Source of the DNA: Tubulanus polymorphus
Taxonomy: Eukaryota > Animalia > Nemertea
Assembly: GCF_964204645.1 (NCBI RefSeq)
Contig: NC_134032.1
Coordinates: 310,001 to 374,000 of the forward strand
Reading direction: 5' to 3'
DNA length: 64,000 bases
The position numbers and the translations under genes were made by a program. Each line of letters opens with the position of its first letter. Within the stretch, counting starts at the first letter, position 1. The notes beneath the pieces were generated by a model that worked only from the letters and a program-made list of their open reading frames with translations, did no database searches and had not been told where the DNA came from. Of this stretch, positions 20,999-63,916 are shown piece after piece.

Positions 20999-21024
20999 TA
21001 TAAAGTGTCTTCATTGTATCTGTC

Positions 21025-24210: not shown

Positions 24211-24693
24211 TTGTCCTCATTATAACCATTGATGAAACACTCTGAGTCCGTATTGTAAAGATATTATAAAATCCCTGCACACTAAGAATAAAAAGAGTCT
24301 GAAATGTTTCCTTGAGCTAGTGTAGTTTATTCAACGTTTCGACTATATCCTAATAGTCATCTTCAGGAATACTGATGTTGTCCTCATTATAACCATTGAT
24401 GAAACACTCTGAGTCCGTGTTGTAAAGATAATATAAAATCCCTGCACACTTAGAATAAAAAGAGTCTGAAATGTTTCCTTGAGCTAGTGTAGTTTATTCA
24501 ACTATATTCTAATAGTCATCTTCAGGAATACTGATGTTGTCCTCATTATAACCATTGATGAAACACTCTGAGTCCGTGTTGTAAAGATATTATAAAATCC
24601 CTGCACACTAAGAATAAAAAGAGTCTGAAATGTTTCCTTGAGCTAGTGTAGTTTATTCAACGTTTCCACTATATCCTAAGCTTCATGAATACT
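24211..24693 (-). mobile_element. 167-bp hammerhead-ribozyme repeat (Penelope pLTR/retrozyme-like), ~3 units
   Basis: Reverse complement of the 58124 and 62037 arrays; one intact hammerhead at ~24329-24372 (-), the others degenerate. Confidence 0.85.
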
Positions 24694-34184: not shown

Positions 34185-35141
34185 TTATGTTTTGAACAAA
34201 TTTAACAACGTTTTTCTGAATTGTTTGTTCACGATTGTGTAAAGTATGAAATTTACACAAGAATTGAATATTGATGAAATCTGGTAAATAAACATTAAAA
34301 CGTCTTGGTAAAATACAGATACATCTTTTCCTCCGATCTTTCCGAAGAAACCCGGAAGTTCTAGAACAGTAAATGCAATACTCATCGAAAGCACCATTTT
34401 AGTAGATTTCGTTTGATTTTGAGATGTTGAGATTTTAGACGCTGACAAAGTTTTGCGATGCTTGCTTTTGACGTACAAAACAATTATAAGAGTTATGTTT
34501 GTCGTGAAAACTAAGATATTGGCAAGAACAACGCGGATGATCGGGTCGATATATTTGTTCATCAGCTTGTAAATCATTTTATAGGCCCCGGTAGTGTAAT
34601 ATCCGTAATGAAGAAATCGGAATCCATAATATCTTCTATTCAATTTCACCCTCATTGTTATAGGGTAATAAGCTCCTAGCGCCATTGATACTATACCCGT
34701 AATGATGATAAGCTGCTTAAAGCTGCGCTTAACTTGGAGCGGAAAAATTATAGTCAACAATCTTTCGCATTGAATTATAACGGTTAAATAATTCCGAAAC
34801 ACGAGGAATCCTAAGCAAAACAAACTTCCCCATATGCTTAATTCTATCGGAGAAATTCGGTAATTAGGAAATTTTTTGATCGAGTCGCCGAATCGCGCGT
34901 AGTGAATGTAATAACGAACTGGATCCTGAATGAACCTTGACAGTAAAAACACGATGTCGACGAGCGCGAGGAGTTTCAGTAAATCGAAGCAGCGGTTTTT
35001 AGTTTTTAGTTTGTAAAATACGACGATAACCAACAGGTTGAATGTAGCGCCGACTGTGATCAGTGGAGGTAAAATGTACGCTTTCAGGTACCACATATAC
35101 TCCCTTAGTGGATTGTAAAAGTAAACTCGAGTTTTGTTCAT
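34185..35141 (-). CDS. Intact intronless 7TM GPCR (318 aa), FMRFamide-receptor/Srw-like
   Basis: ATG at 35141 (MNKT glycosylation sequon); GATFNLLVI, LALVDIVFL, RNYLTVIIQCERLL, FTVLELP, FNSCVNFILY, FRK. Confidence 0.85.
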   Translation of the reverse strand: MNKTRVYFYNPLREYMWYLKAYILPPLITVGATFNLLVIVVFYKLKTKNRCFDLLKLLALVDIVFLLSRFIQDPVRYYIHYARFGDSIKKFPNYRISPIELSIWGSLFCLGFLVFRNYLTVIIQCERLLTIIFPLQVKRSFKQLIIITGIVSMALGAYYPITMRVKLNRRYYGFRFLHYGYYTTGAYKMIYKLMNKYIDPIIRVVLANILVFTTNITLIIVLYVKSKHRKTLSASKISTSQNQTKSTKMVLSMSIAFTVLELPGFFGKIGGKDVSVFYQDVLMFIYQISSIFNSCVNFILYTIVNKQFRKTLLNLFKT

Positions 35142-35180
35142 TGTTTCCAACCGGTCGGTTTGGTCTTCAGCGGTTCTCTC

Positions 35181-35464
35181 CAAACCATTATCTAAACTGA
35201 AACATTCGCATTAGTTACATTCATAAATTTACACCATCGGAAAATAAATCATCAAAACACAAGCTATTTTAGTTATCAGTATGAATAATCTCATTAGGTT
35301 TACATTCAAAACTTTGACGACAGACGTTACGCGTTAAAGCTGAAACCAGTGAAATTCATTTGTGATTATTTTCAGTGTAAATAGCTGTATCTGTTGTGTG
35401 TGCATCCAATTCCTTCGGGGTAGAAGTTGAAAAGCTGAATCGGCGAAACTTCTGGAATTCGTGA
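35181..35464 (+). repeat. Left copy of ~280-bp direct duplication flanking the satellite
   Basis: Near-identical to 55052-55321, which lacks ~14 bp. Confidence 0.92.
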
Positions 35465-38400
35465 GGTGTACAGGTGTGTCCCGAGTTCAAACCCGGTCTA
35501 TTGGTACTGATTCTGAGTGGTCCTGATGCTGAATAGAGGTTGTACAGGTGTGTCCCGGGTTCAAACCCGGTCTATTGGTACTGATTCTGAGTGGTCCTGA
35601 TGCTCAATAGAGGATGTACAGTGGTGTACCGACCGTACGGTGCTGCCGCTATGCTCATCGTTAGCGGGTTTTTCAAACACTAACTATAGTCAACTCTGGC
35701 AATCGACGTGTTCTCCAGTAATACTCCGTAACCCTTGATTGCCAGCGTTGACTAACGTTAGTGTATGAAAATCCCGCTAACAATGAGTATAGCGGCAGCA
35801 CCGTACGGTGAAATGTTGATATCTCAACAAAAGTAATTACTGACACTGATTCTGAGTGGTCCTGATGCTGAATAGAGGATGCACAGTGGTATCCCGGGTT
35901 CAATCCCGGTCTATTGGTACTGATTCTGAGTGGTCCTGATGCTGAATAGAGGTTGTACAGTGGTATCCCGGGTTCAATCCCGGTCTATTGGTACTGATTC
36001 TGGGTGGTTCTGATGCTGAATAGAGGATGCACAGTGGTATCCCGGGTTCAATCCCGGTCTATTGGTACTGATTCTGAGTGGTCCTGATGCTGAATAGAGG
36101 TTGTACAGTGGTATCCCGGGTTCAATCCCGGTCTATTGGTACTGATTCTGGGTGGTTCTGATGCTGAATAGAGGATGCACAGTGGTATCCCGGGTTCAAT
36201 CCCGGTCTATTGTTACTGATTCTGAGTGGTCCTGATGCTGAATAGAGGATGTACAGGGTTGTCCCGGGTTCAATCCCGGTCTATTGGTACTGATTCTGAG
36301 TGGTCCTGATGCTGAATAGAGGATGCACAGTGGTATCCCGGGTTCAATCCCGGTCTATTGGTACTGATTCTGGGTGGTTCTGATGCTGAATAGAGGATGC
36401 ACAGTGGTATCCCGGGTTCAATCCCGGTCTATTGGTACTGATTCTGAGTGGTCCTGATGCTCAATAGAGGATGCACAGTGGTATCCCGGGTTCAATCCCG
36501 GTCTATTGGTACTGATTCTGAGTGGTCCTGATGCTCAATAGAGGATGCACAGTGGTATCCCGGGTTCAATCCCGGTCTATTGTTACTGATTCTGAGTGGT
36601 CCTGATGCTGAATAGAGGTTGTACAGGTGTGTCCCGGGTTCAAACCCGGTCTATTGGTACTGATTCTGGGTGGTCCTGATGCTCAATAGAGGATGCACAG
36701 TGGCATCCCGGGTTCAATCCCGGTCTATTGGTACTGATTCTGAGTGGTCCTGATGCTCAATAGAGGATGCACAGTGGTATCCCGGGTTCAATCCCGGTCT
36801 ATTGTTACTGATTCTGAGTGGTCCTGATGCTGAATAGAGGTTGTACAGGTGTGTCCCGGGTTCAAACCCGGTCTATTGGTACTGATTCTGAGTGGTCCTG
36901 ATGCTCAATAGAGGATGTACAGTGGTGTACCGACCGTACGGTGCTGCCGCTATGCTCATCGTTAGCGGGTTTTTCAAACACTAACTATAGTCAACTCTGG
37001 CAATCGACGTGTTCTCCAGTAATACTCCGTAACCCTTGCTTGCCAGAGTTGACTAACGTTAGTGTATGAAAATCCCGCTAACAATGAGTATAGCGGCAGC
37101 ACCGTACGGTGAAATGTTGATATCTCAACAAAAGTAATTACTGACACTGATTCTGAGTGGTCCTGATGCTGAATAGAGGATGTACAGTGGTATCCCGGGT
37201 TCAAAACCGGTCTATTGGTACTGATTCTGGGTGGTCCTGATGCTGAATAGAGGATGTACAGTGGCGTACCGACCGTACGGTGCTGCCGCTATACTCATCG
37301 TTAGCGGGTTTTTCATACACTAACTTTAGTCAACTCTGGCAATCGACGTGCTCTCCAGTAATACTCCGTAACCCTTGCTTGCCAGAGTACACTTACGTTA
37401 GTGTATGAAAATCCCGCTAACTATGAGCATAGCGGCAGCACCGTACGGTGAAATGTTGATATCTCAACAAAAGTAATTACTGACACTGATTCTGAGTGGT
37501 CCTGATGCTCAATAGAGGATGTACAGGGTTGTCCCGGGTTCAAAACCGGTCTATTGGTACTGATTCAGAGTGTTCCTGATGCTCAATAGAGGATGTACAG
37601 GGTTGTCCCGGGTTCAAAACCGGTCTATTGGTACTGATTCAGAGTGTTCCTGATGCTCAATAGAGGATGTACAGGGTTGTCCCGGGTTCAAAACCGGTCT
37701 GTTGGTACTGATTCTGGGTGGTCCTGATGCTCAATAGAGGATATACAGGGTTTTCCCGGGTTCAAAACCGGTCTATTGGTACTGATTCAGAGTGTTCCTG
37801 ATGCTCAAAAGAGGATGTACAGGGTTGTCCCGGGTTCAAAACCGGTCTATTGGTACTGATTCTGAGTTGTCCTGATGCTCAATAGAGGATGCACAGTGGT
37901 ATCCCGGGTTCAATCCCGGTCTATTGGTACTGATTCAGTGTGTTCCTGATGCTGAATAGAGGATGTACGGTGGCGTACCGACCGTACGGTGCTGCCGCTA
38001 TACTCATCGTTAGCGGGTTTTTCATACACTAACTTTAGTCAACTCTGGCAATCGACGTGCTCTCCAGTAATACTCCGTAACCCTTGCTTGCCAGAGTACA
38101 CTTACGTTAGTGTATGAAAATCCCGCTAACTATGAGCATAGCGGCAGCACCGTACGGTGAAATGTTGATATCTCAACAAAAGTAATTACTGACACTGATT
38201 CTGAGTGGTCCTGATGCTGAATAGAGGATGTACAGGGTTGTCCCGGGTTCAATCCCGGTCTATTGGTACTGATTCTGAGTGGTCCTGATGCTCAATAGAG
38301 GATGCACAGGGTTGTCCCGGGTTCAATCCCGGTCTATTGGTACTGATTCTGAGTGGTCCTGATGCTGAATAGAGGATGCACAGTGATATCCCGGGTTCAA

Positions 38401-41400
38401 TCCCGGTCTATTGGTACTGATTCTGAGTGGTCCTGATGCTGAATAGAGGATGCACAGTGGTATCCCGGGTTCAATCCCGGTCTATTGTTACTGATTCTGA
38501 GTGGTCCTGATGCTGGATAGAGAATGTACAGGGTCGTCCCGGGTTCGATCCCTGTCTATTGGTACTGATTCTGAGTGGTCCTGATGCTCAATAGAGGATG
38601 CACAGTGGTATCCCGGGTTCAATCCCGGTCTATTGGTATTGATTCTGGGTGGTCCTGATGCTGAATAGAGGATGCACAGTGGTATCCCGGGTTCGATCCC
38701 GGTCTGTTGGTACTGATTCTGAGTGGTCCTGATGCTGGATAGAGAATGTACAGGGTCGTCCCGGGTTCGATCCCTGTCTATTGGTACTGATTCTGAGTGG
38801 TCCTGATGCTGAATAGAGGATGCACAGTGGTATCCCGGGTTCAAAACCGGTCTATTGTTACTGATTCTGAGTGGTCCTGATGCTAGATAGAGAATGTACA
38901 GGGTCGTCCCGGGTTCGATCCCTGTCTATTGGTACTGATTCTGAGTGGTCCTGATGCTGAATAGAGGATGTACAGTGGTATCCCGGGTTCAAAACCGGTC
39001 TATTGGTACTGATTCTGAGTGGTCCTGATGCTGAATAGAGGCTGTACAGTGGTATCCCGGGTTCAATCCCGGTCTATTGGTACTGATTCTGAGTGGTCCT
39101 GATGCTGAATAGAGGATGCACAGTGATATCCCGGGTTCAATCCCGGTCTATTGGTACTGATTCTGAGTGGTCCTGATGCTGAATAGAGGATGTACAGTGG
39201 CGTACCGACCGTACGGTGCTGCCGCTATACTCATCGTTAGCGGGTTTTTCATACACTAACTTTAGTCAACTCTGGCAATCGACGTGCTCTCCAGTAATAC
39301 TCCGTAACCCTTGCTTGCCAGAGTACACTTACGTTAGTGTATGAAAATCCCGCTAACTATGAGCATAGCGGCAGCACCGTACGGTGAAATGTTGATATCT
39401 CAACAAAAGTAATTACTGACACTGATTCTGAGTGGTCCTGATGCTCAATAGAGGATGTACAGGGTTGTCCCGGGTTCAATCCCGGTCTATTGGTACTGAT
39501 TCTGAGTGGTCCTGATGCTGAATAGAGGATGCACAGTGGTATCCCGGGTTCAAAACCGGTCTATTGTTACTGATTCTGAGTGGTCCTGATGCTGAATAGA
39601 GGATGCACAGTGGTATCCCGGGTTCAATTCCGGTCTATTGGTACTGATTCTAAGTGGTCCTGATGCTGAATAGAGGATGCACAGTGGTATCCCGGGTTCA
39701 ATCCCGGTCTATTGGTACTGATTCTGAGTGGTCCTGATGCTGAATAGAGGATGCACAGTGGTATCCCGGGTTCAATCCCGGTCTATTGGTACTGATTCTG
39801 AGTGTTCCTGATGCTGAATAGAGGATGTACAGTGGCGTACCGACCGTACGGTGCTGCCGCTATGCTCATCGTTAGCGGGTTTTTCATACACTAACTTTAG
39901 TCAACTCTGGCAATCGACGTGCTCTCCAGTAATACTCCGTAACCCTTGCTTGCCAGAGTTGACTAACGTTAGTGTATGAAAATCCCGCTAACAATGAGTA
40001 TAGCGGCAGCACCGTACGGTGAAATGTTGATATCTCAACAAAAGTAATTACTGACACTGATTCTGAGTGTTCCTGATGCTCAATAGAGGATGTACAGGGT
40101 TGTCCCGGGTTCAAAACCGGTCTATTGGTACTGATTCTGAGTGGTCCTGATGCTGAATAGAGGATGTACAGTGGTATCCCGGGTTCAAAACCGGTCTATT
40201 GGTACTGATTCTGGGTGGTCCTGATGCTCAATAGAGGATGTACAGTGGTATCCCGGGTTCAAAACCGGTCTATTGGTACTGATTCTGAGTGGTCCTGATG
40301 CTGAATAGAGGATGTACAGGGTTGTCCCGGCTTCAAAACCGGTCTATTGGTACTGATTCTGAGTGGTCCTGATGCTCAATAGAGGATGAACAGTGGTATC
40401 CAGGGTTCAAAACCGGTCTATTGGTACTGATTCTGAGTGGTCCTGATGCTGAATAGAGGATGCACAGTGGTATCCCGGGTTCAATCCCGGTCTATTGGTA
40501 CTGATTCTGAGTGTTCCTGATGCTGAATAGAGGATGTACAGTGGCGTACCGACCGTACGGTGCTGCCGCTATGCTCATCGTTAGCGGGTTTTTCATACAC
40601 TAACTTTAGTCAACTCTGGCAATCGACGTGCTCTCCAGTAATACTCCGTAACCCTTGCTTGCCAGAGTTGACTAACGTTAGTGTATGAAAATCCCGCTAA
40701 CAATGAGTATAGCGGCAGCACCGTACGGTGAAATGTTGATATCTCAACAAAAGTAATTACTGACACTGATTCTGAGTGTTCCTGATGCTCAATAGAGGAT
40801 GTACAGGGTTGTCCCGGGTTCAAAACCGGTCTATTGGTACTGATTCTGAGTGGTCCTGATGCTGAATAGAGGATGTACAGTGGTATCCCGGGTTCAAAAC
40901 CGGTCTATTGGTACTGATTCTGGGTGGTCCTGATGCTCAATAGAGGATGTACAGTGGTATCCCGGGTTCAAAACCGGTCTATTGGTACTGATTCTGAGTG
41001 GTCCTGATGCTGAATAGAGGATGTACAGGGTTGTCCCGGCTTCAAAACCGGTCTATTGGTACTGATTCTGAGTGGTCCTGATGCTCAATAGAGGATGAAC
41101 AGTGGTATCCAGGGTTCAAAACCGGTCTATTGGTACTGATTCTAAGTGGTCCTGATGCTGAATAGAGGATGTACAGGTGTTTCCCGGGTTCAAACCAGGT
41201 CTCTTGGTACTGATTCAGAGTGTTCCTGATGCTCAATAGAGGATGTACAGGGTTGTCCCGGGTTCAAAACCGGTCTATTGGTACTGATTCTGGGTGGTCC
41301 TGATGCTGAATAGAGGATGCACAGTGGTATCCCGGGTTCATTCCCGGTCTATTGGTACTGATTCTGGGTGGTCCTGATGCTCAATAGAGGATGCACAGTG

Positions 41401-44400
41401 GTATCCCGGGTTCATTCCCGGTCTATTGGTACTGATTCTAAGTGGTCCTGATGCTCAATAGAGGATGTACAGGGTTTTCCCGGGTTCAAAACCGGTCTAT
41501 TGGTACTGATTCAGAGTGTTCCTGATGCTCAATAGAGGATGTACAGGGTTTTCCCGGGTTCAAAACCGGTCTATTGGTACTGATTCTGAGTGGTCCTGAT
41601 GCTGAATAGAGGATGCACAGTGGTATCCCGGGTTCATTCCCGGTCTATTGGTACTGATTCTAAGTGGTCCTGATGCTCAATAGAGGATGTACAGGGTTTT
41701 CCCGGGTTCAAAACCGGTCTATTGGTACTGATTCTGAGTGGTCCTGATGCTCAATAGAGGATGTACAGTGGTATCCCGGGTTCAATCCCGGTCTATTGGT
41801 ACTGATTCTGAGTGGTCCTGATGCTGAATAGAGGATGTACAGTGGTATCCCGGGTTCAAACCCGGTCTATTGGTACTGATTCTGAGTGGTCCTGATGCTC
41901 AATAGAGGATGTACAGTGGCGTACCGACCGTACGGTGCTGCCGCTATACTCATCGTTAGCGGGTTTTTCATACACTAACTTTAGTCAACTCTGGCAATCG
42001 ACGTGCTCTCCAGTAATACTCCGTAACCCTTGCTTGCCAGAGTACACTTACGTTAGTGTATGAAAATCCCGCTAACTATGAGCATAGCGGCAGCACCGTA
42101 CGGTGAAATGTTGTTATCTCAACAAAAGTAATTACTGACACTGATTCTGAGTGGTCCTGATGCTCAATAGAGGATGTACAGGGTTGTCCCGGGTTCAAAA
42201 CCGGTCTATTGGTACTGATTCAGAGTGTTCCTGATGCTCAATAGAGGATGTACAGGGTTGTCCCGGGTTCAAAACCGGTCTATTGGTACTGATTCAGAGT
42301 GTTCCTGATGCTCAATAGAGGATGTACAGGGTTGTCCCGGGTTCAAAACCGGTCTGTTGGTACTGATTCTGGGTGGTCCTGATGCTCAATAGAGGATATA
42401 CAGGGTTTTCCCGGGTTCAAAACCGGTCTATTGGTACTGATTCAGAGTGTTCCTGATGCTCAATAGAGGATGTACAGGGTTGTCCCGGGTTCAAAACCGG
42501 TCTATTGTTACTGATTCTGAGTTGTCCTGATGCTCAATAGAGGATGCACAGTGGTATCCCGGGTTCAATCCCGGTCTGTTGGTACTGATTCTAAGTGGTC
42601 CTGATGCTGAATAGAGGATGCACAGTGGTATCCCGGTTTCAATCCCGGTCTATTGGTACTGATTCTGAGTGGTCCTGATGCTGAATAGAGGATGTACAGG
42701 TGTTTCCCGGGTTCAAACCCGGTCTATTGGTACTGATTCAGTGTGTTCCTGATGCTCAATAGAGGATGTACGGTGGCGTACCGACCGTACGGTGCTGCCG
42801 CTATACTCATCGTTAGCGGGTTTTTCATACACTAACTTTAGTCAACTCTGGCAATCGACGTGCTCTCCAGTAATACTCCGTAACCCTTGCTTGCCAGAGT
42901 ACACTTACGTTAGTGTATGAAAATCCCGCTAACTATGAGCATAGCGGCAGCACCGTACGGTGAAATGTTGATATCTCAACAAAAGTAATTACTGACACTG
43001 ATTCTGAGTGGTCCTGATGCTGAATAGAGGATGCACAGTGGTATCCCGGGTTCAATCCCGGTCTATTGGTATTGATTCTGGGTGGTCCTGATGCTGAATA
43101 GAGGATGCACAGTGGTATCCCGGGTTCAATCCCGGTCTATTGTTACTGATTCTAAGTGGTCCTGATGCTGAATAGAGGATGCACAGTGGTATCCCGGGTT
43201 CAAAACCGGTCTATTGGTACTGATTCTAAGTGGTCCTGATGCTGAATAGAGGATGCACAGTGGTATCCCGGGTTCAATCCCGGTCTATTGGTACTGATTC
43301 TGAGTGGTCCTGATGCTCAATAGAGGATGCACAGTGGTATCCCGGGTTCAATCCCGGTCTATTGTTACTGATTCTGAGTGGTCCTGATGCTGGATAGAGA
43401 ATGTACAGGGTCGTCCCGGGTTCGATCCCTGTCTATTGGTACTGATTCTGAGTGGTCCTGATGCTGAATAGAGGATGTACAGTGGTATCCCGGGTTCAAA
43501 ACCGGTCTATTGGTACTGATTCTGAGTGGTCCTGATGCTCAATAGAGGATGTACAGTGGTATCCCGGGTTCAATCCCGGTCTATTGGTACTGATTCTGAG
43601 TGGTCCTGATGCTGAATAGAGGATGTACAGTGGTATCCCGGGTTCAAACCCGGTCTATTGGTACTGATTCTGAGTGGTCCTGATGCTCAATAGAGGATGT
43701 ACAGTGGCGTACCGACCGTACGGTGCTGCCGCTATACTCATCGTTAGCGGGTTTTTCATACACTAACTTTAGTCAACTCTGGCAATCGACGTGCTCTCCA
43801 GTAATACTCCGTAACCCTTGCTTGCCAGAGTACACTTACGTTAGTGTATGAAAATCCCACTAACTATGAGCATAGCGGCAGCACCGTACGGTGAAATGTT
43901 GATATCTCAACAAAAGTCATTACTGACACTGATTCTGAGTGGTCCTGATGCTCAATAGAGGATGTACAGGGTTGTCCCGGGTTCAAAACCGGTCTATTGG
44001 TACTGATTCAGAGTGTTCCTGATGCTCAATAGAGGATGTACAGGGTTGTCCCGGGTTCAAAACCGGTCTATTGGTACTGATTCAGAGTGTTCCTGATGCT
44101 CAATAGAGGATGTACAGGGTTGTCCCGGGTTCAAAACCGGTCTGTTGGTACTGATTCTGGGTGGTCCTGATGCTCAATAGAGGATATACAGGGTTTTCCC
44201 GGGTTCAAAACCGGTCTATTGGTACTGATTCAGAGTGTTCCTGATGCTCAATAGAGGATGTACAGGGTTGTCCCGGGTTCAAAACCGGTCTATTGTTACT
44301 GATTCTGAGTTGTCCTGATGCTCAATAGAGGATGCACAGTGGTATCCCGGGTTCAATCCCGGTCTGTTGGTACTGATTCTAAGTGGTCCTGATGCTGAAT

Positions 44401-47400
44401 AGAGGATGTACAGGTGTTTCCCGGGTTCAAACCCGGTCTATTGGTACTGATTCAGTGTGTTCCTGATGCTCAATAGAGGATGTACGGTGGCGTACCGACC
44501 GTACGGTGCTGCCGCTATACTCATCGTTAGCGGGTTTTTCATACACTAACTTTAGTCAACTCTGGCAATCGACGTGCTCTCCAGTAATACTCCGTAACCC
44601 TTGCTTGCCAGAGTACACTTACGTTAGTGTATGAAAATCCCGCTAACTATGAGCATAGCGGCAGCACCGTACGGTGAAATGTTGATATCTCAACAAAAGT
44701 AATTACTGACACTGATTCTGAGTGGTCCTGATGCTGAATAGAGGATGCACAGTGGTATCCCGGGTTCAATCCCGGTCTATTGGTATTGATTCTGGGTGGT
44801 CCTGATGCTGAATAGAGGATGCACAGTGGTATCCCGGGTTCAATCCCGGTCTATTGTTACTGATTCTAAGTGGTCCTGATGCTGAATAGAGGATGCACAG
44901 TGGTATCCCGGGTTCAAAACCGGTCTATTGGTACTGATTCTAAGTGGTCCTGATGCTGAATAGAGGATGCACAGTGGTATCCCGGGTTCAATCCCGGTCT
45001 ATTGGTACTGATTCTGAGTGGTCCTGATGCTCAATAGAGGATGCACAGTGGTATCCCGGGTTCAATCCCGGTCTATTGGTATTGATTCTGGGTGGTCCTG
45101 ATGCTGAATAGAGGATGCACAGTGGTATCCCGGGTTCAATCCCGGTCTATTGTTACTGATTCTAAGTGGTCCTGATGCTGAATAGAGGATGCACAGTGGT
45201 ATCCCGGGTTCAAAACCGGTCTATTGGTACTGATTCTAAGTGGTCCTGATGCTGAATAGAGGATGCACAGTGGTATCCCGGGTTCAATCCCGGTCTATTG
45301 GTACTGATTCTGAGTGGTCCTGATGCTCAATAGAGGATGCACAGTGGTATCCCGGGTTCAATCCCGGTCTATTGTTACTGATTCTGAGTGGTCCTGATGC
45401 TGGATAGAGAATGTACAGGGTCGTCCCGGGTTCGATCCCTGTCTATTGGTACTGATTCTGAGTGGTCCTGATGCTGAATAGAGGATGTACAGTGGTATCC
45501 CGGGTTCAATCCCGGTCTATTGGTACTGATTCTGAGTGGTCCTGATGCTGAATAGAGGATGTACAGGGTTGTCCCGGGTTCAATCCCGGTCTATTGTTAC
45601 TGATTCTGAGTGTTCCTGATGCTCAATAGAGGATGTACAGGGTTGTCCCGGGTTCAATCCCGGTCTATTGGTACTGATTCTGAGTGGTCCTGATGCTGAA
45701 TAGAGGATGTACAGGGTTGTCCCGGGTTCAATCCCGGTCTATTGGTACTGATTCTGAGTGGTCCTGATGCTGAATAGAGGATGCACAGTGGTATCCCGGG
45801 TTCAATCCCGGTCTATTGGTACTGATTCTGAGTGGTCCTGATGCTGGATAGAGAATGTACAGGGTCGTCCCGGGTTCAAAACCGGTCTATTGGTACTGAT
45901 TCTGAGTGGTCCTGATGCTCAATAGAGGATGCACAGTGGTATCCCGGGTTCATTCCCGGTCTATTGGTACTGATTCTAAGTGGTCCTGATGCTCAATAGA
46001 GGATGTACAGGGTTTTCCCGGGTTCAAAACCGGTCTATTGGTACTGATTCTAAGTGGTCCTGATGCTGAATAGAGGATGCACAGTGGTATCCCGGGTTCA
46101 ATCCCGGTCTATTGGTACTGATTCTGAGTGGTCCTGATGCTCAATAGAGGATGTACAGTGGTATCCCGGGTTCAATCCCGGTCTATTGGTACTGATTCTG
46201 AGTGGTCCTGATGCTGAATAGAGGATGTACAGTGGTATCCCGGGTTCAAACCCGGTCTATTGGTACTGATTCTGAGTGGTCCTGATGCTCAATAGAGGAT
46301 GTACAGTGGCGTACCGACCGTACGGTGCTGCCGCTATACTCATCGTTAGCGGGTTTTTCATACACTAACTTTAGTCAACTCTGGCAATCGACGTGCTCTC
46401 CAGTAATACTCCGTAACCCTTGCTTGCCAGAGTACACTTACGTTAGTGTATGAAAATCCCGCTAACTATGAGCATAGCGGCAGCACCGTACGGTGAAATG
46501 TTGATATCTCAACAAAAGTAATTACTGACACTGATTCTGAGTGGTCCTGATGCTCAATAGAGGATGTACAGGGTTGTCCCGGGTTCAAAACCGGTCTATT
46601 GGTACTGATTCAGAGTGTTCCTGATGCTCAATAGAGGATGTACAGGGTTGTCCCGGGTTCAAAACCGGTCTATTGGTACTGATTCAGAGTGTTCCTGATG
46701 CTCAATAGAGGATGTACAGGGTTGTCCCGGGTTCAAAACCGGTCTGTTGGTACTGATTCTGGGTGGTCCTGATGCTCAATAGAGGATATACAGGGTTTTC
46801 CCGGGTTCAAAACCGGTCTATTGGTACTGATTCAGAGTGTTCCTGATGCTCAATAGAGGATGTACAGGGTTGTCCCGGGTTCAAAACCGGTCTATTGTTA
46901 CTGATTCTGAGTTGTCCTGATGCTCAATAGAGGATGCACAGTGGTATCCCGGGTTCAATCCCGGTCTGTTGGTACTGATTCTAAGTGGTCCTGATGCTGA
47001 ATAGAGGATGCACAGTGGTATCCCGGTTTCAATCCCGGTCTATTGGTACTGATTCTGAGTGGTCCTGATGCTGAATAGAGGATGTACAGGTGTTTCCCGG
47101 GTTCAAACCCGGTCTATTGGTACTGATTCAGTGTGTTCCTGATGCTCAATAGAGGATGTACGGTGGCGTACCGACCGTACGGTGCTGCCGCTATACTCAT
47201 CGTTAGCGGGTTTTTCATACACTAACTTTAGTCAACTCTGGCAATCGACGTGCTCTCCAGTAATACTCCGTAACCCTTGCTTGCCAGAGTACACTTACGT
47301 TAGTGTATGAAAATCCCGCTAACTATGAGCATAGCGGCAGCACCGTACGGTGAAATGTTGATATCTCAACAAAAGTAATTACTGACACTGATTCTGAGTG

Positions 47401-50400
47401 GTCCTGATGCTGAATAGAGGATGCACAGTGGTATCCCGGGTTCAATCCCGGTCTATTGGTATTGATTCTGGGTGGTCCTGATGCTGAATAGAGGATGCAC
47501 AGTGGTATCCCGGGTTCAATCCCGGTCTATTGTTACTGATTCTAAGTGGTCCTGATGCTGAATAGAGGATGCACAGTGGTATCCCGGGTTCAAAACCGGT
47601 CTATTGGTACTGATTCTAAGTGGTCCTGATGCTGAATAGAGGATGCACAGTGGTATCCCGGGTTCAATCCCGGTCTATTGGTACTGATTCTGAGTGGTCC
47701 TGATGCTCAATAGAGGATGCACAGTGGTATCCCGGGTTCAATCCCGGTCTATTGTTACTGATTCTGAGTGGTCCTGATGCTGGATAGAGAATGTACAGGG
47801 TCGTCCCGGGTTCGATCCCTGTCTATTGGTACTGATTCTGAGTGGTCCTGATGCTGAATAGAGGATGTACAGTGGTATCCCGGGTTCAAAACCGGTCTAT
47901 TGGTACTGATTCTGAGTGGTCCTGATGCTCAATAGAGGATGTACAGTGGTATCCCGGGTTCAATCCCGGTCTATTGGTACTGATTCTGAGTGGTCCTGAT
48001 GCTGAATAGAGGATGTACAGTGGTATCCCGGGTTCAAACCCGGTCTATTGGTACTGATTCTGAGTGGTCCTGATGCTCAATAGAGGATGTACAGTGGCGT
48101 ACCGACCGTACGGTGCTGCCGCTATACTCATCGTTAGCGGGTTTTTCATACACTAACTTTAGTCAACTCTGGCAATCGACGTGCTCTCCAGTAATACTCC
48201 GTAACCCTTGCTTGCCAGAGTACACTTACGTTAGTGTATGAAAATCCCACTAACTATGAGCATAGCGGCAGCACCGTACGGTGAAATGTTGATATCTCAA
48301 CAAAAGTAATTACTGACACTGATTCTGAGTGGTCCTGATGCTCAATAGAGGATGTACAGGGTTGTCCCGGGTTCAAAACCGGTCTATTGGTACTGATTCA
48401 GAGTGTTCCTGATGCTCAATAGAGGATGTACAGGGTTGTCCCGGGTTCAAAACCGGTCTATTGGTACTGATTCAGAGTGTTCCTGATGCTCAATAGAGGA
48501 TGTACAGGGTTGTCCCGGGTTCAAAACCGGTCTGTTGGTACTGATTCTGGGTGGTCCTGATGCTCAATAGAGGATATACAGGGTTTTCCCGGGTTCAAAA
48601 CCGGTCTATTGGTACTGATTCAGAGTGTTCCTGATGCTCAATAGAGGATGTACAGGGTTGTCCCGGGTTCAAAACCGGTCTATTGTTACTGATTCTGAGT
48701 TGTCCTGATGCTCAATAGAGGATGCACAGTGGTATCCCGGGTTCAATCCCGGTCTGTTGGTACTGATTCTAAGTGGTCCTGATGCTGAATAGAGGATGCA
48801 CAGTGGTATCCCGGTTTCAATCCCGGTCTATTGGTACTGATTCTGAGTGGTCCTGATGCTGAATAGAGGATGTACAGGTGTTTCCCGGGTTCAAACCCGG
48901 TCTATTGGTACTGATTCAGTGTGTTCCTGATGCTCAATAGAGGATGTACGGTGGCGTACCGACCGTACGGTGCTGCCGCTATACTCATCGTTAGCGGGTT
49001 TTTCATACACTAACTTTAGTCAACTCTGGCAATCGACGTGCTCTCCAGTAATACTCCGTAACCCTTGCTTGCCAGAGTACACTTACGTTAGTGTATGAAA
49101 ATCCCGCTAACTATGAGCATAGCGGCAGCACCGTACGGTGAAATGTTGATATCTCAACAAAAGTAATTACTGACACTGATTCTGAGTGGTCCTGATGCTG
49201 AATAGAGGATGCACAGTGGTATCCCGGGTTCAATCCCGGTCTATTGTTACTGATTCTAAGTGGTCCTGATGCTGAATAGAGGATGCACAGTGGTATCCCG
49301 GGTTCAAAACCGGTCTATTGGTACTGATTCTAAGTGGTCCTGATGCTGAATAGAGGATGCACAGTGGTATCCCGGGTTCAATCCCGGTCTATTGGTACTG
49401 ATTCTGAGTGGTCCTGATGCTCAATAGAGGATGCACAGTGGTATCCCGGGTTCAATCCCGGTCTATTGTTACTGATTCTGAGTGGTCCTGATGCTGGATA
49501 GAGAATGTACAGGGTCGTCCCGGGTTCGATCCCTGTCTATTGGTACTGATTCTGAGTGGTCCTGATGCTGAATAGAGGATGTACAGTGGTATCCCGGGTT
49601 CAATCCCGGTCTATTGGTACTGATTCTGAGTGGTCCTGATGCTGAATAGAGGATGTACAGGGTTGTCCCGGGTTCAATCCCGGTCTATTGTTACTGATTC
49701 TGAGTGTTCCTGATGCTCAATAGAGGATGTACAGGGTTGTCCCGGGTTCAATCCCGGTCTATTGGTACTGATTCTGAGTGGTCCTGATGCTGAATAGAGG
49801 ATGTACAGGGTTGTCCCGGGTTCAATCCCGGTCTATTGGTACTGATTCTGAGTGGTCCTGATGCTGAATAGAGGATGCACAGTGGTATCCCGGGTTCAAT
49901 CCCGGTCTATTGGTACTGATTCTGAGTGGTCCTGATGCTGGATAGAGAATGTACAGGGTCGTCCCGGGTTCAATCCCGGTCTATTGGTACTGATTCTGAG
50001 TGGTCCTGATGCTGAATAGAGGATGTACAGTGGTATCCCGGGTTCAATCCCGGTCTATTGGTACTGATTCTGAGTGGTCCTGATGCTGAATAGAGGATGT
50101 ACAGGGTTGTCCCGGGTTCAATCCCGGTCTATTGGTACTGATTCTGAGTGGTCCTGATGCTGAATAGAGGATGCACAGTGGTATCCAGGGTTCAAAACCG
50201 GTCTATTGGTACTGATTCTGAGTGGTCCTGATGCTCAATAGAGGATGCACAGTGGTATCCCGGGTTCAATCCCGGTCTATTGGTACTGATTCTGAGTGGT
50301 CCTGATGCTGGATAGAGAATGTACAGGGTCGTCCCGGGTTCAATCCCGGTCTATTGGTACTGATTCTGAGTGGTCCTGATGCTGAATAGAGGATGTACAG

Positions 50401-53400
50401 TGGTATCCCGGGTTCAATCCCGGTCTATTGGTACTGATTCTGAGTGGTCCTGATGCTGAATAGAGGATGTACAGGGTTGTCCCGGGTTCAATCCCGGTCT
50501 ATTGTTACTGATTCTGAGTGTTCCTGATGCTCAATAGAGGATGTACAGGGTTGTCCCGGGTTCAATCCCGGTCTATTGGTACTGATTCTGAGTGGTCCTG
50601 ATGCTGAATAGAGGATGCACAGTGGTATCCAGGGTTCAAAACCGGTCTATTGGTACTGATTCTAAGTGGTCCTGATGCTCAATAGAGGATGCACAGGGTT
50701 GTCCCGGGTTCAATCCCGGTCTATTGGTACTGATTCTGGGTGGTCCTGATGCTCAATAGAGGATGCACAGGGTTGTCCCGGGTTCAATCCCGGTCTATTG
50801 GTACTGATTCTGGGTGGTCCTGATGCTCAATAGAGGATGCACAGTGGTATCCCGGGTTCAATCCCGGTCTATTGGTACTGATTCTAAGTGGTCCTGATGC
50901 TGAATAGAGGTTGTACAGTGATATCCCGGGTTCAATCCCGGTCTATTGGTACTGATTCTGAGTGTTCCTGATGCTCAATAGAGGATGTACAGTGGTATCC
51001 CGGGTTCAATCCCGGTCTATTGGTACTGATTCTGAGTGGTCCTGATGCTGAATAGAGGATGCACAGTGATATCCCGGGTTCAAACCCGGTCTATTGGTAC
51101 TGATTCTGAGTGGTCCTGATGCTCAATAGAGGATGTACAGTGGCGTACCGACCGTACGGTGCTGCCGCTATACTCATCGTTAGCGGGTTTTTCATACACT
51201 AACTTTAGTCAACTCTGGCAATTGACGTGCTCTCCAGTAATACTCCGTAACCCTTGCTTGCCAGAGTACACTTACGTTAGTGTATGAAAATCCCGCTAAC
51301 TATGAGCATAGCGGCAGCACCGTACGGTGAAATGTTGATATCTCAACAAAAGTAATTACTGACACTGATTCTGAGTGGTCCTGATGCTCAATAGAGGATG
51401 TACAGGGTTGTCCCGGGTTCAAAACCGGTCTATTGGTACTGATTCAGAGTGTTCCTGATGCTCAATAGAGGATGTACAGGGTTGTCCCGGGTTCAAAACC
51501 GGTCTATTGTTACTGATTCTAAGTGGTCCTGATGCTGAATAGAGGATGCACAGTGGTATCCCGGGTTCAAAACCGGTCTATTGGTACTGATTCTAAGTGG
51601 TCCTGATGCTGAATAGAGGATGCACAGTGGTATCCCGGGTTCAATCCCGGTCTATTGGTACTGATTCTGAGTGGTCCTGATGCTCAATAGAGGATGCACA
51701 GTGGTATCCCGGGTTCAATCCCGGTCTATTGTTACTGATTCTGAGTGGTCCTGATGCTGGATAGAGAATGTACAGGGTCGTCCCGGGTTCGATCCCTGTC
51801 TATTGGTACTGATTCTGAGTGGTCCTGATGCTGAATAGAGGATGTACAGTGGTATCCCGGGTTCAATCCCGGTCTATTGGTACTGATTCTGAGTGGTCCT
51901 GATGCTGAATAGAGGATGTACAGGGTTGTCCCGGGTTCAATCCCGGTCTATTGTTACTGATTCTGAGTGTTCCTGATGCTCAATAGAGGATGTACAGGGT
52001 TGTCCCGGGTTCAATCCCGGTCTATTGGTACTGATTCTGAGTGGTCCTGATGCTGAATAGAGGATGTACAGGGTTGTCCCGGGTTCAATCCCGGTCTATT
52101 GGTACTGATTCTGAGTGGTCCTGATGCTGAATAGAGGATGCACAGTGGTATCCCGGGTTCAATCCCGGTCTATTGGTACTGATTCTGAGTGGTCCTGATG
52201 CTGGATAGAGAATGTACAGGGTCGTCCCGGGTTCAATCCCGGTCTATTGGTACTGATTCTGAGTGGTCCTGATGCTGAATAGAGGATGTACAGTGGTATC
52301 CCGGGTTCAATCCCGGTCTATTGGTACTGATTCTGAGTGGTCCTGATGCTGAATAGAGGATGTACAGGGTTGTCCCGGGTTCAATCCCGGTCTATTGGTA
52401 CTGATTCTGAGTGGTCCTGATGCTGAATAGAGGATGCACAGTGGTATCCAGGGTTCAAAACCGGTCTATTGGTACTGATTCTGAGTGGTCCTGATGCTCA
52501 ATAGAGGATGCACAGTGGTATCCCGGGTTCAATCCCGGTCTATTGGTACTGATTCTGAGTGGTCCTGATGCTGGATAGAGAATGTACAGGGTCGTCCCGG
52601 GTTCAATCCCGGTCTATTGGTACTGATTCTGAGTGGTCCTGATGCTGAATAGAGGATGTACAGTGGTATCCCGGGTTCAATCCCGGTCTATTGGTACTGA
52701 TTCTGAGTGGTCCTGATGCTGAATAGAGGATGTACAGGGTTGTCCCGGGTTCAATCCCGGTCTATTGTTACTGATTCTGAGTGTTCCTGATGCTCAATAG
52801 AGGATGTACAGGGTTGTCCCGGGTTCAATCCCGGTCTATTGGTACTGATTCTGAGTGGTCCTGATGCTGAATAGAGGATGCACAGTGGTATCCAGGGTTC
52901 AAAACCGGTCTATTGGTACTGATTCTAAGTGGTCCTGATGCTCAATAGAGGATGCACAGGGTTGTCCCGGGTTCAATCCCGGTCTATTGGTACTGATTCT
53001 GGGTGGTCCTGATGCTCAATAGAGGATGCACAGGGTTGTCCCGGGTTCAATCCCGGTCTATTGGTACTGATTCTGGGTGGTCCTGATGCTCAATAGAGGA
53101 TGCACAGTGGTATCCCGGGTTCAATCCCGGTCTATTGGTACTGATTCTAAGTGGTCCTGATGCTGAATAGAGGTTGTACAGTGATATCCCGGGTTCAATC
53201 CCGGTCTATTGGTACTGATTCTGAGTGTTCCTGATGCTCAATAGAGGATGTACAGTGGTATCCCGGGTTCAATCCCGGTCTATTGGTACTGATTCTGAGT
53301 GGTCCTGATGCTGAATAGAGGATGCACAGTGATATCCCGGGTTCAAACCCGGTCTATTGGTACTGATTCTGAGTGGTCCTGATGCTCAATAGAGGATGTA

Positions 53401-55050
53401 CAGTGGCGTACCGACCGTACGGTGCTGCCGCTATACTCATCGTTAGCGGGTTTTTCATACACTAACTTTAGTCAACTCTGGCAATTGACGTGCTCTCCAG
53501 TAATACTCCGTAACCCTTGCTTGCCAGAGTACACTTACGTTAGTGTATGAAAATCCCGCTAACTATGAGCATAGCGGCAGCACCGTACGGTGAAATGTTG
53601 ATATCTCAACAAAAGTAATTACTGACACTGATTCTGAGTGGTCCTGATGCTCAATAGAGGATGTACAGGGTTGTCCCGGGTTCAAAACCGGTCTATTGGT
53701 ACTGATTCAGAGTGTTCCTGATGCTCAATAGAGGATGTACAGGGTTGTCCCGGGTTCAAAACCGGTCTATTGTTACTGATTCTGAGTTGTCCTGATGCTC
53801 AATAGAGGATGTACAGTGGTATCCCGGGTTCAATCCCGGTCTGTTGGTACTGATTCTAAGTGGTCCTGATGCTGAATAGAGGATGCACAGTGGGGTCCCG
53901 GGTTCAATCCCGGTCTATTGGTACTGATTCTGAGTGGTCCTGATGCTCAATAGAGGATGCACAGTGGTATCCCGGGTTCAAAACCGGTCTATTGGTACTG
54001 ATTCTGAGTGGTCCTGATGCTGAATAGAGGATGCACAGTGGTATCCCTGGTTCAATCCCGGTCTATTGGTACTGATTCTGAGTGGTCCTGATGCTCAATA
54101 GAGGATGTACAGTGGTATCCCGGGTTCAATCCCGGTCTGTTGGTACTGATTCTAAGTGGTCCTGATGCTGAATAGAGGATGTATTGGCGTGTACCGGCCG
54201 TACGGTGCTCCCGCTATACTCATCGTTAGCGGGTTTTTCATACACTAACTTTAGTCAACTCTGGCAATCGACGTGCTCTCCAGTAATACTCCGTAACCCT
54301 TGCTTGCCAGAGTACACTTACGTTAGTGTATGAAAATCCCGCTAACTATGAGCATAGCGGCAGCACCGTACGGTGAAATGTTGATATCTCAACAAAAGTA
54401 ATTACTGACACTGATTCTGAGTGGTCCTGATGCTCAATAGAGGATGTACAGGGTTGTCCCGGGTTCAATCCCGGTCTATTGGTACTGATTCTGGGTGGTC
54501 CTGATGCTGAATAGAGGATGCACAGTGGTATCCCGGGTTCAATCTTGGTCTATTGGTACTGATTCTGAGTGGTCCTGATGCTGAATAGAGGATGTACAGG
54601 TGTGTCCCGGGTTCAAAACTGGTCTATTGTTACTGATTCTGAGTGTTCCTGATGCTGAATAGAGGATGTACAGTGGCGTACCGACCGTACGGTGCTGCCG
54701 CTATGCTCATCGTTAGCGGGTTTTTCATACACTAACTTTAGTCAACTCTGGCAATCGACGTGCTCTCCAGTAATACTCCGTAACCCTTGCTTGCCAGAGT
54801 TGACTTACGTTAGTGTATGAAAATCCCGCTAACAATGAGCATAGCGGCAGCACCTTACGGTAAAATGTTGATGTCTTAAAAGTAATTACTGGCACATATT
54901 CTGAGTGGTCCTGATGCTGAATAGAGGATGTACAGGTGTGTCCCGGGTTCAAACCCGGTCTATTGGTACTGATTCTGAGTGGTCCTGATGCTCAGTAGAG
55001 GTTGTACAGGGTTGTCCCGGGTTCAAACCCAGTAATTACTGGCAATTCCC
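35465..55050 (+). repeat. 19.6-kb composite satellite: 74-bp monomers with 19 interspersed ~215-bp hairpin modules, organised in higher-order repeats
   Basis: Monomer ctgattctgagtggtcctgatgctgaatagaggatgcacagtggtatcccgggttcaatcccggtctattggta (period 74); hairpins with ~71-bp arms from 35632 to ~54860. Confidence 0.97.
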
Positions 55051-55051
55051 T

Positions 55052-55321
55052 CAAACCATTATCTAAACTGAAAAATCCGCATTAGTTACATTTACAAATT
55101 TACACCATCGGAAAATAAATCATCCAAACACAAGCTATTTTAGTTATCAGTATGAATAATCTCATTAGGTTTACATTCAAAACTTTGACGACAGACGTTA
55201 CGCGTTAAAGCTGAAACCAGTGAAATTCATTTGTGATTATTTTCAGTGTAAATAGCTGTATCTGTTGTGTGTGCATCCAATTCCTTCGGGGTAGAAGTTG
55301 AAAAACTTCTGGAATTCGTGA
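55052..55321 (+). repeat. Right copy of the flanking direct duplication
   Basis: Matches 35181-35464. Confidence 0.92.
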
Positions 55322-62036: not shown

Positions 62037-63916
62037 CAGTATCATTCCTGGACTATTAGGATATAGTGGAAACGATGAATAAACTACACTAGCTCAAGGA
62101 ATACAGTATTCCTGAAGATGACTATTAGGATATAGTGGAAACGATGAATAAACTACACTAGCTCAAGGAAACATTTCAGACTCTTTTTATTCTTAGTGTG
62201 CAGGGATTTTATATTATCTTTACAACACGGACTCAGAGTGTTTCATCAATGGTTATAATGAGGACAACATCAGTATTCCTGAAGATGACTACTAGGATAT
62301 AGTGGAAACGTTGAATAAACTACACTAGCTCAAGGAAACATTTCAGACTCTTTTTATTCTTAGTGTGCAGGGATTTTATATTATCTTTACAACACGGGCT
62401 CAGAGTGTTTCATCAATGGTTATAATGAGGACGACATCAGTATTCCTGAAGATGACTATTAGGATATAGTGGAAACATTGAATAAACTACACTAGCTCAA
62501 GGAAACATTTCAGACTCTTTTTATTCTTAGTGTGCAGGGATTTTATATTATCTTTACAACACGGACTCAGAGTGTTTCATCAATGGTTATAATGAGGACA
62601 ACATCAGTATTCCTGAAGATGACTATTAGGATATAGTGGAAACGTTGAATAAACTACACTAGCTCAAGGAAACATTTCAGACTCTTTTTATTCTTAGTGT
62701 GCAGGGATTTTATATTATCTTTACAACACGGACTCAGAGTGTTTCATCAATGGTTATAATGAGGACAACATCAGTATTCCTGAAGATGACTACTAGGATA
62801 TAGTGGAAACGTTGAATAAACTACACTAGCTCAAGGAAACATTTCAGACTCTTTTTATTCTTAGTGTGCAGGGATTTTATATTATCTTTACAACACGGAC
62901 TCAGAGTGTTTCATCAATGGTTATAATGAGGACAACATCAGTATTTCTGAAGATGACTATTAGGATATAGTGGAAACGTTGAATAAACTACACTAGCTCA
63001 AGGAAACATTTCAGACTCTTTTTATTGTTAGTGTGCAGGGATTTTATATTATCTTTACAACACGGACTCAGAGTGTTTCATCAATGGTTATAATGAAGAC
63101 AGCATCAGTATTCCTGAAGATGACTATTAGGATATAGTCGAAACGTTGAATAAACTACACTAGCTCAAGGAAACATTTCAGACTCTTTTTATTCTTAGTG
63201 TGCAGGGATTTTATATTATCTTTACAACACGGACTCAGAGTGTTTCATCAATGGTTATAATGAGGACAACATCAGTATTCCTGAAGATGACTATTAGGAT
63301 ATAGTGGAAACGTTGAATAAACTACACTAGCTCAAGGAAACATTTCAGACTCTTTTTATTCTTAGTGTGCAGGGATTTTATATTATCTTTACAACACGGA
63401 CTCAGAGTGTTTCATCAATGGTTATAATGAGGACAACATCTGTATTCCTGAAGATGACTATTAGGATATAGTGGAAACGTTGAATAAACTACACTAGCTC
63501 AAGGAAACATTTCAGACTCTTTTTATTCTTAGTGTGCAGGGATTTTATATTATCTTTACAACACGGACTCAGAGTGTTTCATCAATGGTTATAATGAGGA
63601 CAACATCAGTATTCCTGAAGATGACTATTAGGATATAGTCGAAACGTTGAATAAACTACACTAGCTCAAGGAAACATTTCAGACTCTTTTTATTCTTATT
63701 GTGCAGGGATTTTATATTATCTTTACAACACAGACTCAGAGTGTTTCATCAATGGTTATAATGAGGACAACATCAGTATTCCTGATGATGACTATTAGGA
63801 TATAGTGGAAACGTTGAATAAACTACACTAGCTCAAGGAAACATTTCAGACTCTTTTTATTCTTAGTGTGCAGGGATTTTATATTATCTTTACAACACGG
63901 ACTCGCAGTGTTTCAT
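62037..63916 (+). mobile_element. 167-bp hammerhead-ribozyme tandem array, ~11 units (retrozyme-like)
   Basis: CTGA(A/T)GA cores every 167 bp from 62112 to 63782; copies at 63114 and 63615 keep ATAGTC-GAAA, the others read ATAGTG-GAAA. Confidence 0.9.

Follow-up and report, generated by a model that had tools for sequence, protein, structure and literature searches.

A probably transposon-derived composite satellite of 74-bp monomers and long palindromes upstream of a GPCR gene in Tubulanus polymorphus

The 19.6-kb array described here is probably a transposon-derived composite satellite, a reading to which we assign a probability of roughly 0.7. It lies in the window, i.e., the whole 64,000-nucleotide stretch of Tubulanus polymorphus DNA that was analyzed (NC_134032.1, positions 310,001 to 374,000), and is conventional satellite biology, though uncommonly tidy in its anatomy. 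In a neat and completely assembled form, the locus would illustrate how the tandem-repeat module of a mobile element turns into a satellite. The repeated cassette (about two monomers, a palindrome and about two monomers) is seen as a single copy in dispersed elements, in short arrays joined to such elements, within an 11-kb macrosatellite near chromosome ends and as the free-standing 19.6-kb array.

Units of 74 bp are reported by Tandem Repeats Finder between 35463 and about 55030, and the duplicated flank sets the exact edges of the insert at 35465-55045. The array is unidirectional, and about 196 full-length 74-bp monomers were counted in a BLAST census. The inverted-repeat search returned 20 pairs, one of which (I1) is a cross-match of neighbouring copies and was not counted; the other 19 are hairpins whose arms measure 70-73 nt, are 89-96% complementary and are separated by 32-36 nt. 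The composite satellite of 74-bp monomers punctuated by 19 hairpins, as claimed in the preliminary description, is real. The first and last modules each have about 2.2 monomers on their outward side. The array and its palindromic modules (arms and spacer) are as follows:

35465..55045, + strand, composite satellite, with about 196 monomers of full length (74 bp), 19 truncated ones and 19 palindromic modules
35632..35809, + strand, palindromic module 1 (pair I4, 73-nt arms, 90%)
36933..37110, + strand, palindromic module 2 (pair I6, 92%)
37272..37449, + strand, palindromic module 3 (pair I7, 90%)
37981..38158, + strand, palindromic module 4 (pair I8)
39208..39385, + strand, palindromic module 5 (pair I9)
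39843..40020, + strand, palindromic module 6 (pair I2, 94%)
40552..40729, + strand, palindromic module 7 (pair I3, 94%)
41927..42104, + strand, palindromic module 8 (pair I10)
42784..42961, + strand, palindromic module 9 (pair I11)
43715..43892, + strand, palindromic module 10 (pair I18, 89%)
44498..44675, + strand, palindromic module 11 (pair I12)
46317..46494, + strand, palindromic module 12 (pair I13)
47174..47351, + strand, palindromic module 13 (pair I14)
48105..48282, + strand, palindromic module 14 (pair I19, 89%)
48962..49139, + strand, palindromic module 15 (pair I15)
51151..51328, + strand, palindromic module 16 (pair I16)
53414..53591, + strand, palindromic module 17 (pair I17)
54198..54373, + strand, palindromic module 18 (pair I20, 70-nt arms)
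54684..54861, + strand, palindromic module 19 (pair I5, 93%)

The monomer before each module is truncated identically in all 19 cases (...GGATGTAC[A/G]GTGG[C/T]GTACC), and every module starts with GACCGTACGG. The inverted arms of about 71 nt, the spacer of about 36 nt and the constant point of entry into the monomer, all noted earlier from the sequence, hold for 19 of 19 modules. The small stem-loop TGTTGA-TATC-TCAACA and the palindrome AGTAATTACT are found after the module as described, and a T5 run is found in the left arm of the window modules. When folded as DNA, module 3 reaches -72.5 kcal/mol (z = -14.5 vs. shuffles). One example of the 3' tail is:

35810..35844, + strand, tail after a module: non-monomer stretch with a 6-bp stem-loop, then AGTAATTACTGAC

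As AGTAATTACTG is the family-majority monomer junction, the monomer resumes there after the module tail. The module and its 22-nt tail stand in place of about 11 nt of monomer, and the module flanks (GTGTCCCG on the left, GAAATG... on the right) have no duplicated bases.

Genome-wide, the family comprises about 2,970 monomers and about 363 hairpins, and the cassette is present on at least 10 contigs. An identical monomer/hairpin junction at fixed spacing was found for 291 of the approximately 363 hairpins (at least 80%), and both junctions are common to all 99 aligned hairpin copies. Head-to-tail monomers, array-specific homogenization and larger repeat periods make this a satellite with higher-order structure.

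The common junction bears on whether the palindrome could be an independent MITE-type transposon, which inserted once into an existing monomer and was then passively co-amplified. Such an origin would fit the 71-nt arms as terminal inverted repeats and the family consensus, which is an almost perfect inverted repeat. It would also fit the diverged relatives (L046, L044/L045), which retain the terminal ACCGT..GTGCTGCC motif around differing inner parts and thereby resemble MITE subfamilies with shared terminal inverted repeats. However, among the approximately 125 copies inspected there was no solo hairpin and no target-site duplication; every sampled copy is set among monomers, and the diverged relatives also adjoin monomers. 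A single junction in at least 80% of the hairpins, and a module that replaces monomer sequence, also argue against this origin, which we regard as unlikely. Of the suggested MITE- or Helentron-like element co-amplified with a SINE-head satellite, the link to a mobile element and the joint amplification stand; the independent MITE and the SINE head are not supported.

The mobile-element link comes from a dispersed, non-coding repeat that adjoins the monomers, whose unique part extends over at least 1.7 kb and which has hundreds of copies. In six loci (L023, L033, L041, L047, L051 and L053), the monomer block begins at one and the same base after ...gatcgtctctaa, and none of the six has a microsatellite at this junction. 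The junction flank is present in at least 40 near-full copies with 89-99% identity across chromosome arms (445 first-look candidates, and 2,006 for the distal part of the repeat). No ORF above 77 aa was found in the unique part, and no transposon-like ORF of 120 aa or more in the 11-kb duplicon. In interior copies of the repeat, the hairpin is found at a distance of a few monomers, with hairpins 280-540 bp from copies of the flank. A second, right-hand palindromic module of about 240 bp recurs in some loci. Because none of the unique part of the element adjoins the window array, the array would be related to the dispersed element by sequence family only.

Two loci, L021 and L023, have a foldback-like layout in which long inverted arms of tandem repeats surround a common 1.3-kb centre: monomers in + orientation, the centre, and monomers in - orientation. 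The centre is inverted between the two loci, and in L023 it is bounded by 90-bp inverted repeats. This resembles Tetris of Drosophila virilis, a foldback transposon with the TIR-220 satellite, which is likewise a non-autonomous modular element whose inverted arms hold tandem repeats, and whose repeats also build kilobase-scale satellite-like arrays in many rearranged forms (PMC4079207). In contrast to Tetris, the monomers here are 74-76 bp rather than 220 bp, a long palindrome is fixed within the repeat unit, and the arrays are mostly near chromosome ends instead of in beta-heterochromatin (PMC4079207).

A second comparison is with Cg_HINE of Crassostrea gigas, a non-autonomous HINE/Helentron element carrying the Cg170 satellite-like array (PMC7492417). 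Hallmarks of HINEs include 11-12-bp subterminal inverted repeats, a left flank ending in a microsatellite, TT insertion sites and a right flank of 60 bp that includes a short palindrome (PMC7492417). In both cases a tandem array meets a conserved left flank at a fixed junction and in the same relative orientation, palindromes accompany the array, and the array is dispersed as part of the element (PMC7492417); this likeness is one of array layout. The palindromes here differ in being ten times longer and in lying within the array.

Taken as a transposon-derived satellite, the family could have arisen as follows. The 74-76-bp monomers would represent the tandemly repeated module in a family of dispersed non-coding repeats, whose other components are the unique part (at least 1.7 kb) and a 178-bp palindrome with its tail; some copies would add the second palindrome (about 240 bp) and the 1.3-kb centre in a foldback-like layout. 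We infer that the repeats were born inside the element, rather than being a satellite that the element captured. The long palindrome was presumably fixed once inside a monomer, where it displaced the second half of the GGGTTCGAACCC motif, and the cassette would thereafter have been inherited as a unit and spread with the element. Amplification, mostly near chromosome ends, may have proceeded by unequal crossing-over and segmental duplication, giving rise to arrays and to the 11-kb macrosatellite.

The window copy is monophyletic and locally expanded. Its 19 hairpins form a single clade (support 96/80) and are 97.6% identical to each other; their identity to hairpin copies from the other loci sampled is 81-92%. 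The array has expanded through segmental duplications of 0.7, 2.3 and 4.4 kb, the two larger of which are:

40765..48880, + strand, 4390-bp segmental tandem duplication within the array (40765-44489 = 45155-48880, 3727 bp, 97.5%)
49175..54183, + strand, 2263-bp segmental tandem duplication within the array (49175-51920 = 51438-54183, 2747 bp, 98.8%)

Unique host DNA is directly duplicated on either side of the array, and array and duplication together lie 324 bp upstream of the GPCR gene:

35174..35464, + strand, left-hand copy of the direct duplication that flanks the array, in unique host DNA upstream of the GPCR gene
55046..55321, + strand, right copy of the flanking direct duplication

The duplication is 276-291 bp long and these are its only two copies in the genome. 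They differ by 6 mismatches in 276 aligned bases (2.2%, similar to the divergence within the array) and by indels of 14 bp and 1 bp. A long flanking duplication was considered as a trait of the family and rejected, as it was found at the window locus only. In the protein searches, an exact look-up gave no match, and a protein atlas led solely to invertebrate receptors, most of them spiralian. Assemblies are error-prone in long satellite arrays, and the repeat could in principle have been mis-assembled or artificially expanded. However, the differences among the copies form ordered, nested variants and include segmental duplications, diverged duplicates of an otherwise unique flank enclose the array, and the cassette is found again on other contigs, which makes an assembly artefact extremely improbable.

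Unequal crossing-over alone does not explain the long flanking duplication. A satellite-only piece probably integrated upstream of the GPCR gene with a 276-291-bp target duplication, perhaps when a staggered break was repaired or when extrachromosomal satellite DNA re-inserted, and would then have grown in place to 19.6 kb by the three sizes of duplication. With its long duplicated flank and a receptor gene close by, the locus can serve to study how satellite DNA gets to new sites, and it can also be used to ask whether the satellite affects a neighbouring promoter. A more far-reaching version, which we consider very unlikely, is that the cassette itself is the propagating unit, released as satellite DNA and re-integrated at breaks, and perhaps also a Pol III-driven source of hairpin RNA. 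If this were true, cassettes would be released, e.g., as extrachromosomal circles with help from the palindromes, and would leave target duplications of about 280 bp on re-integration. New arrays could then be seeded beside genes independently of a transposase, and the hairpin RNAs would be directed against the parent element.

The monomers had been described as tRNA-like. They resemble tRNA genes and SINE heads with Pol III type-2 promoters in their unit of about 74 bp and in matching the internal B box GGTTCGANNCC, which reads GGTTCGAACCC in the family consensus monomer and occurs as GGTTCAATCCC, GGTTCAAAACC and GGTTCAAACCC in window monomers. In the consensus, AGTGG stands about 37 nt upstream of the B-box match, and ATTCTGAGTGG, read by eye, fits 6 of the 9 specified positions of the A box TRGCNNAGTGG. 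The B-box-like motif thus stands, but the tRNA does not: ARAGORN found 0 tRNA genes in the window, and RF00005 was absent from the monomers, both in the window and in the family type, at the Rfam gathering threshold and even at E<=10. Unlike tRNA genes, the monomers have no cloverleaf and no covariance-model match, and their "T loop" consists of a 12-bp palindrome whose loop has 4-6 nt instead of 7. Monomer folding was not better than that of shuffles (z = +0.4 to +1.3), and the three-way junction proposed by eye is not the minimum-energy fold.

The arrangement also differs from that of a tRNA-derived SINE. In the + orientation of the monomers, the unique part (at least 1.7 kb) is found upstream of them, and isolated sites are short tandem blocks, not head-body-tail units. 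With negative detectors and monomers downstream of the unique part instead of at a 5' head, a SINE head or tRNA origin could not be demonstrated, and tRNA or SINE identity was rejected. A repeat thus cannot be named tRNA-like on the strength of a B-box-like motif and a period of 74 bp.

The same motifs underlie the idea of a functional RNA locus, in which monomers are transcribed by Pol III from A and B boxes and the palindromes give hairpin RNAs that are processed to small RNAs, e.g., to silence the parent element. The consensus holds a perfect B-box match (GGTTCGAACC) and the hairpins are highly stable. However, the B-box motif is itself a palindrome and therefore uninformative on strand, and the T5 run, put forward as a potential Pol III terminator, is restricted to arrays on chromosome 8 and to a few related copies; most copies elsewhere do without it. 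The closing stem of the three-way junction is likewise confined to the chromosome-8 variant. Pairing is not kept by compensatory change, because covariation was no higher than in shuffled controls: the arms of 99 hairpins gave 4 compensated cells vs. 2.2 expected (79 of 500 shuffles were as high), and the junction in 100 monomers scored 0.131 vs. 0.133 for shuffles. Moreover, pairing is poorer in the variant that is most amplified in the window than in the family consensus (-115.7 vs. -129.7 kcal/mol). The arrays show no sign of selection for RNA structure, and judged by sequence conservation the Pol III/small-RNA alternative appears unsupported; we hold a functional RNA locus to be improbable. 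The lack of covariation is compatible with small-RNA production, which tolerates mismatches, and any RNA or small RNA derived from the palindromes would be a by-product and not a conserved function.

Hairpin-RNA (endo-siRNA) loci of Drosophila and plants are made of long inverted repeats. The array shares with them near-perfect arms of about 70-80 bp, a short spacer and many tandem copies. It differs in that arm substitutions are uncompensated and that the family itself is the sole target identified here.

Placement along the chromosomes is far from even. Of the exact hairpin matches, 97 of 100 are located no more than 2 Mb from a contig end, vs. 16% expected, as are 28 of the 31 clusters of exact matches; with a looser hairpin pattern, roughly 60% of clusters are near ends. 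This strong enrichment, the 11-kb macrosatellite common to several chromosome ends, and telomere-like repeats nearby could indicate that the family is maintained for chromosome ends, as a subtelomeric buffer or recombination substrate, with the window copy as a stray. However, many copies are interior and joined to the dispersed repeat, and neutral repeats would be similarly enriched in regions where recombination costs are low and ectopic exchange occurs. Block ends also fall at arbitrary monomer phases, and we find a chromosome-end role quite unlikely.

The outer ends of the monomer blocks are variable. Defined transposon ends for the blocks were considered and rejected, as the monomer phase at which a block begins or stops varies widely on the left and on the right. 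Several block ends coincide with the palindrome AGTAATTACT.

The array at 35465-55045 is a transposon-derived composite satellite, built of 74-bp monomers and palindromic modules (hairpins). Tandem Repeats Finder placed the 74-bp units from 35463 to ~55030, a BLAST census counted 196 full monomers, and an inverted-repeat search found 19 hairpins with arms of 70-73 nt that are 89-96% complementary and separated by 32-36 nt. Before all 19 modules, which start with GACCGTACGG, the preceding monomer is truncated at one identical base. On the 3' side of each module follows a 22-nt non-monomer tail with a 6-bp stem-loop, and then AGTAATTACTG. Module folding compared with shuffles gave z = -14.5. As the 74-bp units, the 19 hairpins, the common module junctions and the fold were confirmed by repeat searches, alignment and folding, the preliminary description of the array (including fixed entry position, stem-loop and palindrome) is accurate.

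The interpretation of the monomers as tRNA-like fared differently. ARAGORN found no tRNA in the window, and Rfam at E<=10 found none in window monomers or in family-type monomers from another chromosome. Monomer folds on either strand were no better than those of shuffles (z from -0.2 to +1.3). The proposed three-way junction is not the minimum-energy fold, and its covariation score among 100 distinct monomers from 22 loci was 0.131 vs 0.133 in shuffles. Its closing stem AATAGA/TCTATT is found mainly in chromosome-8 arrays (the window and the comparison locus L020), with a few copies in L011, L024 and L031. ARAGORN, Rfam, the comparison of folds with shuffles and the lack of covariation speak against a tRNA-like identity, and no SINE head could be demonstrated in the family. 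A perfect B-box match is present in the family consensus monomer, but it lies within the 12-bp palindrome GGGTTCGAACCC and therefore reads identically on both strands; this palindrome leaves a loop of 4-6 nt, not a T loop. The family-majority monomer junction is itself the palindrome CAGTAATTACTG, which means that the "agtaattact" after each hairpin is the ancestral monomer junction.

The hairpin appears to be free of structural selection, judging from 99 copies (90 distinct). Paired cells in the arms made up 94.6%, exactly the shuffled expectation, and 4 cells were compensated vs 2.2 expected, a number reached by 79 of 500 shuffles. Many arm positions are broken, each in 20-33 sequences. The family consensus comes close to a perfect palindrome (-136.7 kcal/mol), and pairing is poorer in the variant that has been amplified most in the window (-115.7 vs -129.7 kcal/mol). 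The left-arm T5 run, suggested as a Pol III terminator, is indeed present as GGGTTTTTC in chromosome-8 arrays, but only there and in a few related copies, while most hairpins elsewhere have GGGATTTCC or GGGATTTTC at this site. Sequence conservation lends no support to the idea of a locus producing Pol III transcripts or small RNAs.

Across the 268 Mb genome, in which the window spans 310001-374000 of chromosome 8, a monomer 25-mer with <=3 mismatches gave 2,971 matches vs 0 control matches, the arm-to-loop pattern of the hairpin gave 363, and the monomer-hairpin junction at fixed spacing gave 291. In the 46 loci retrieved, each hairpin examined had monomer context, and those apparently free of monomers still have part of a degenerate monomer at their junction. 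Neither a solo hairpin nor a target-site duplication at a hairpin was found in these loci, which speaks against an independent MITE. At L039 and L040, where the monomer has a deletion, a ~41-bp tandem repeat directly abuts the hairpin. Exact-match hairpins are strongly subtelomeric, with 97 of 100 copies and 28 of 31 clusters <2 Mb from a contig end vs 16% expected; a looser pattern adds interior copies and leaves roughly 60% of clusters near contig ends. Several chromosome ends and one interior site share a non-coding ~11.2-kb tandem duplicon without a long ORF, whose units are 92-95% identical and each contain one cassette (~2.5 monomers, hairpin, ~2 monomers).

Sites of the ~11.2-kb duplicon (L014-L019; C, chromosome)
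C7:22-56 kb
C4:27.17-27.29 Mb
C1:31.80-31.87 Mb
C10:13.93-14.19 Mb
C6:9.50-9.53 Mb

The monomer block starts at one base, after ...gatcgtctctaa, in L023, L033, L041, L047, L051 and L053. The flank beside it is a dispersed repeat with at least 40 near-full copies (89-99% identity) across chromosome arms among 445 first-look candidates, and ~10 copies lack part of the side facing the monomers. Flank homology extends at least 1.65 kb and continues beyond that, the farther part having 2,006 candidates, older subfamilies included; no ORF in the dispersed unique part exceeds 77 aa. Hairpin matches lie 280-540 bp from flank copies at, for example, C3:2.208 Mb, C3:7.635 Mb, C1:23.82 Mb and C2:29.18 Mb, and the same flank adjoins arrays of kilobase size at C4:24.04 and 24.58 Mb. 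The outer ends of monomer blocks fall at many monomer phases, and a second, unrelated palindromic module of ~240 bp recurs on this outer side. In L021 and L023, monomer arrays in opposite orientation surround a common 1.3-kb centre, flipped between the two loci, in a foldback-like layout. Diverged hairpin relatives differ in inner sequence and loop, but they retain the terminal ACCGT..GTGCTGCC motif and adjoin monomers too.

Recurring palindromic modules
L049:1164-1400, ~240-bp module; also in L022, L023, L021, L025/L026 and L048
L046:1206-1358, diverged hairpin relative
L044, diverged hairpin relative
L045, ~1264-1420, diverged hairpin relative

The fixed flank junction, the hairpins near the flank and the recurring modules argue that monomers and palindrome belong to a single repeat family that is modular and non-autonomous. 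Of the suggested MITE/Helentron-like element co-amplified with a SINE-head satellite, the co-amplification and the transposon link are retained, but not the independent MITE or the SINE head. Of described systems, the family most resembles the foldback element Tetris, which has the TIR-220 satellite (PMC4079207), and HINE elements with satellite-like arrays (PMC7492417).

On each side of the window array lies one copy of a directly duplicated stretch of otherwise unique DNA (35174-35464 and 55046-55321); the copies differ by 6 mismatches in 276 aligned bases and a 14-bp indel. These are the only two copies genome-wide; no comparable flanking duplication was found at other loci, and the dispersed element's unique part is absent from the window. 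The 19 window hairpins form one clade (support 96/80), are 97.6% alike vs 81-92% to copies at other sampled loci, and have their nearest relatives on the same chromosome. The array includes segments duplicated in tandem, one of 4390 bp (97.5% over 3.7 kb), one of 2263 bp (98.8% over 2.7 kb) and one of 709 bp, and the flank divergence of 2.2% is similar to that within the array. We infer that the integration of a small satellite-only piece here was accompanied by a long duplication of the target, and that this piece then grew in place through unequal exchange.

The array begins 324 bp upstream of the ATG of a GPCR ORF, and of the duplicated 280-bp upstream sequence this ORF retains one copy; an ORF search of the window gave a second such ORF.

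Intronless Srw/rhodopsin-type GPCR ORFs
34185-35141, minus strand, ATG at 35141
19478-20221, plus strand

An Rfam scan of the whole window at gathering threshold returned no family, including for the 167-bp satellite, which forms two arrays (58124-58537 and 62104-63916). Tandem Repeats Finder, which detected these arrays, also reported a related 159-bp array upstream (24211-24679), a 49-bp satellite at 21023-22229 (24.6 copies, 94% matches) and TTAGGG-type interstitial repeats. The unit of a 75/144-bp tandem repeat at 12029-12373 starts with CTAACCCTAACC, an interstitial telomere-like motif, and a similar motif adjoins the cassette at L012.
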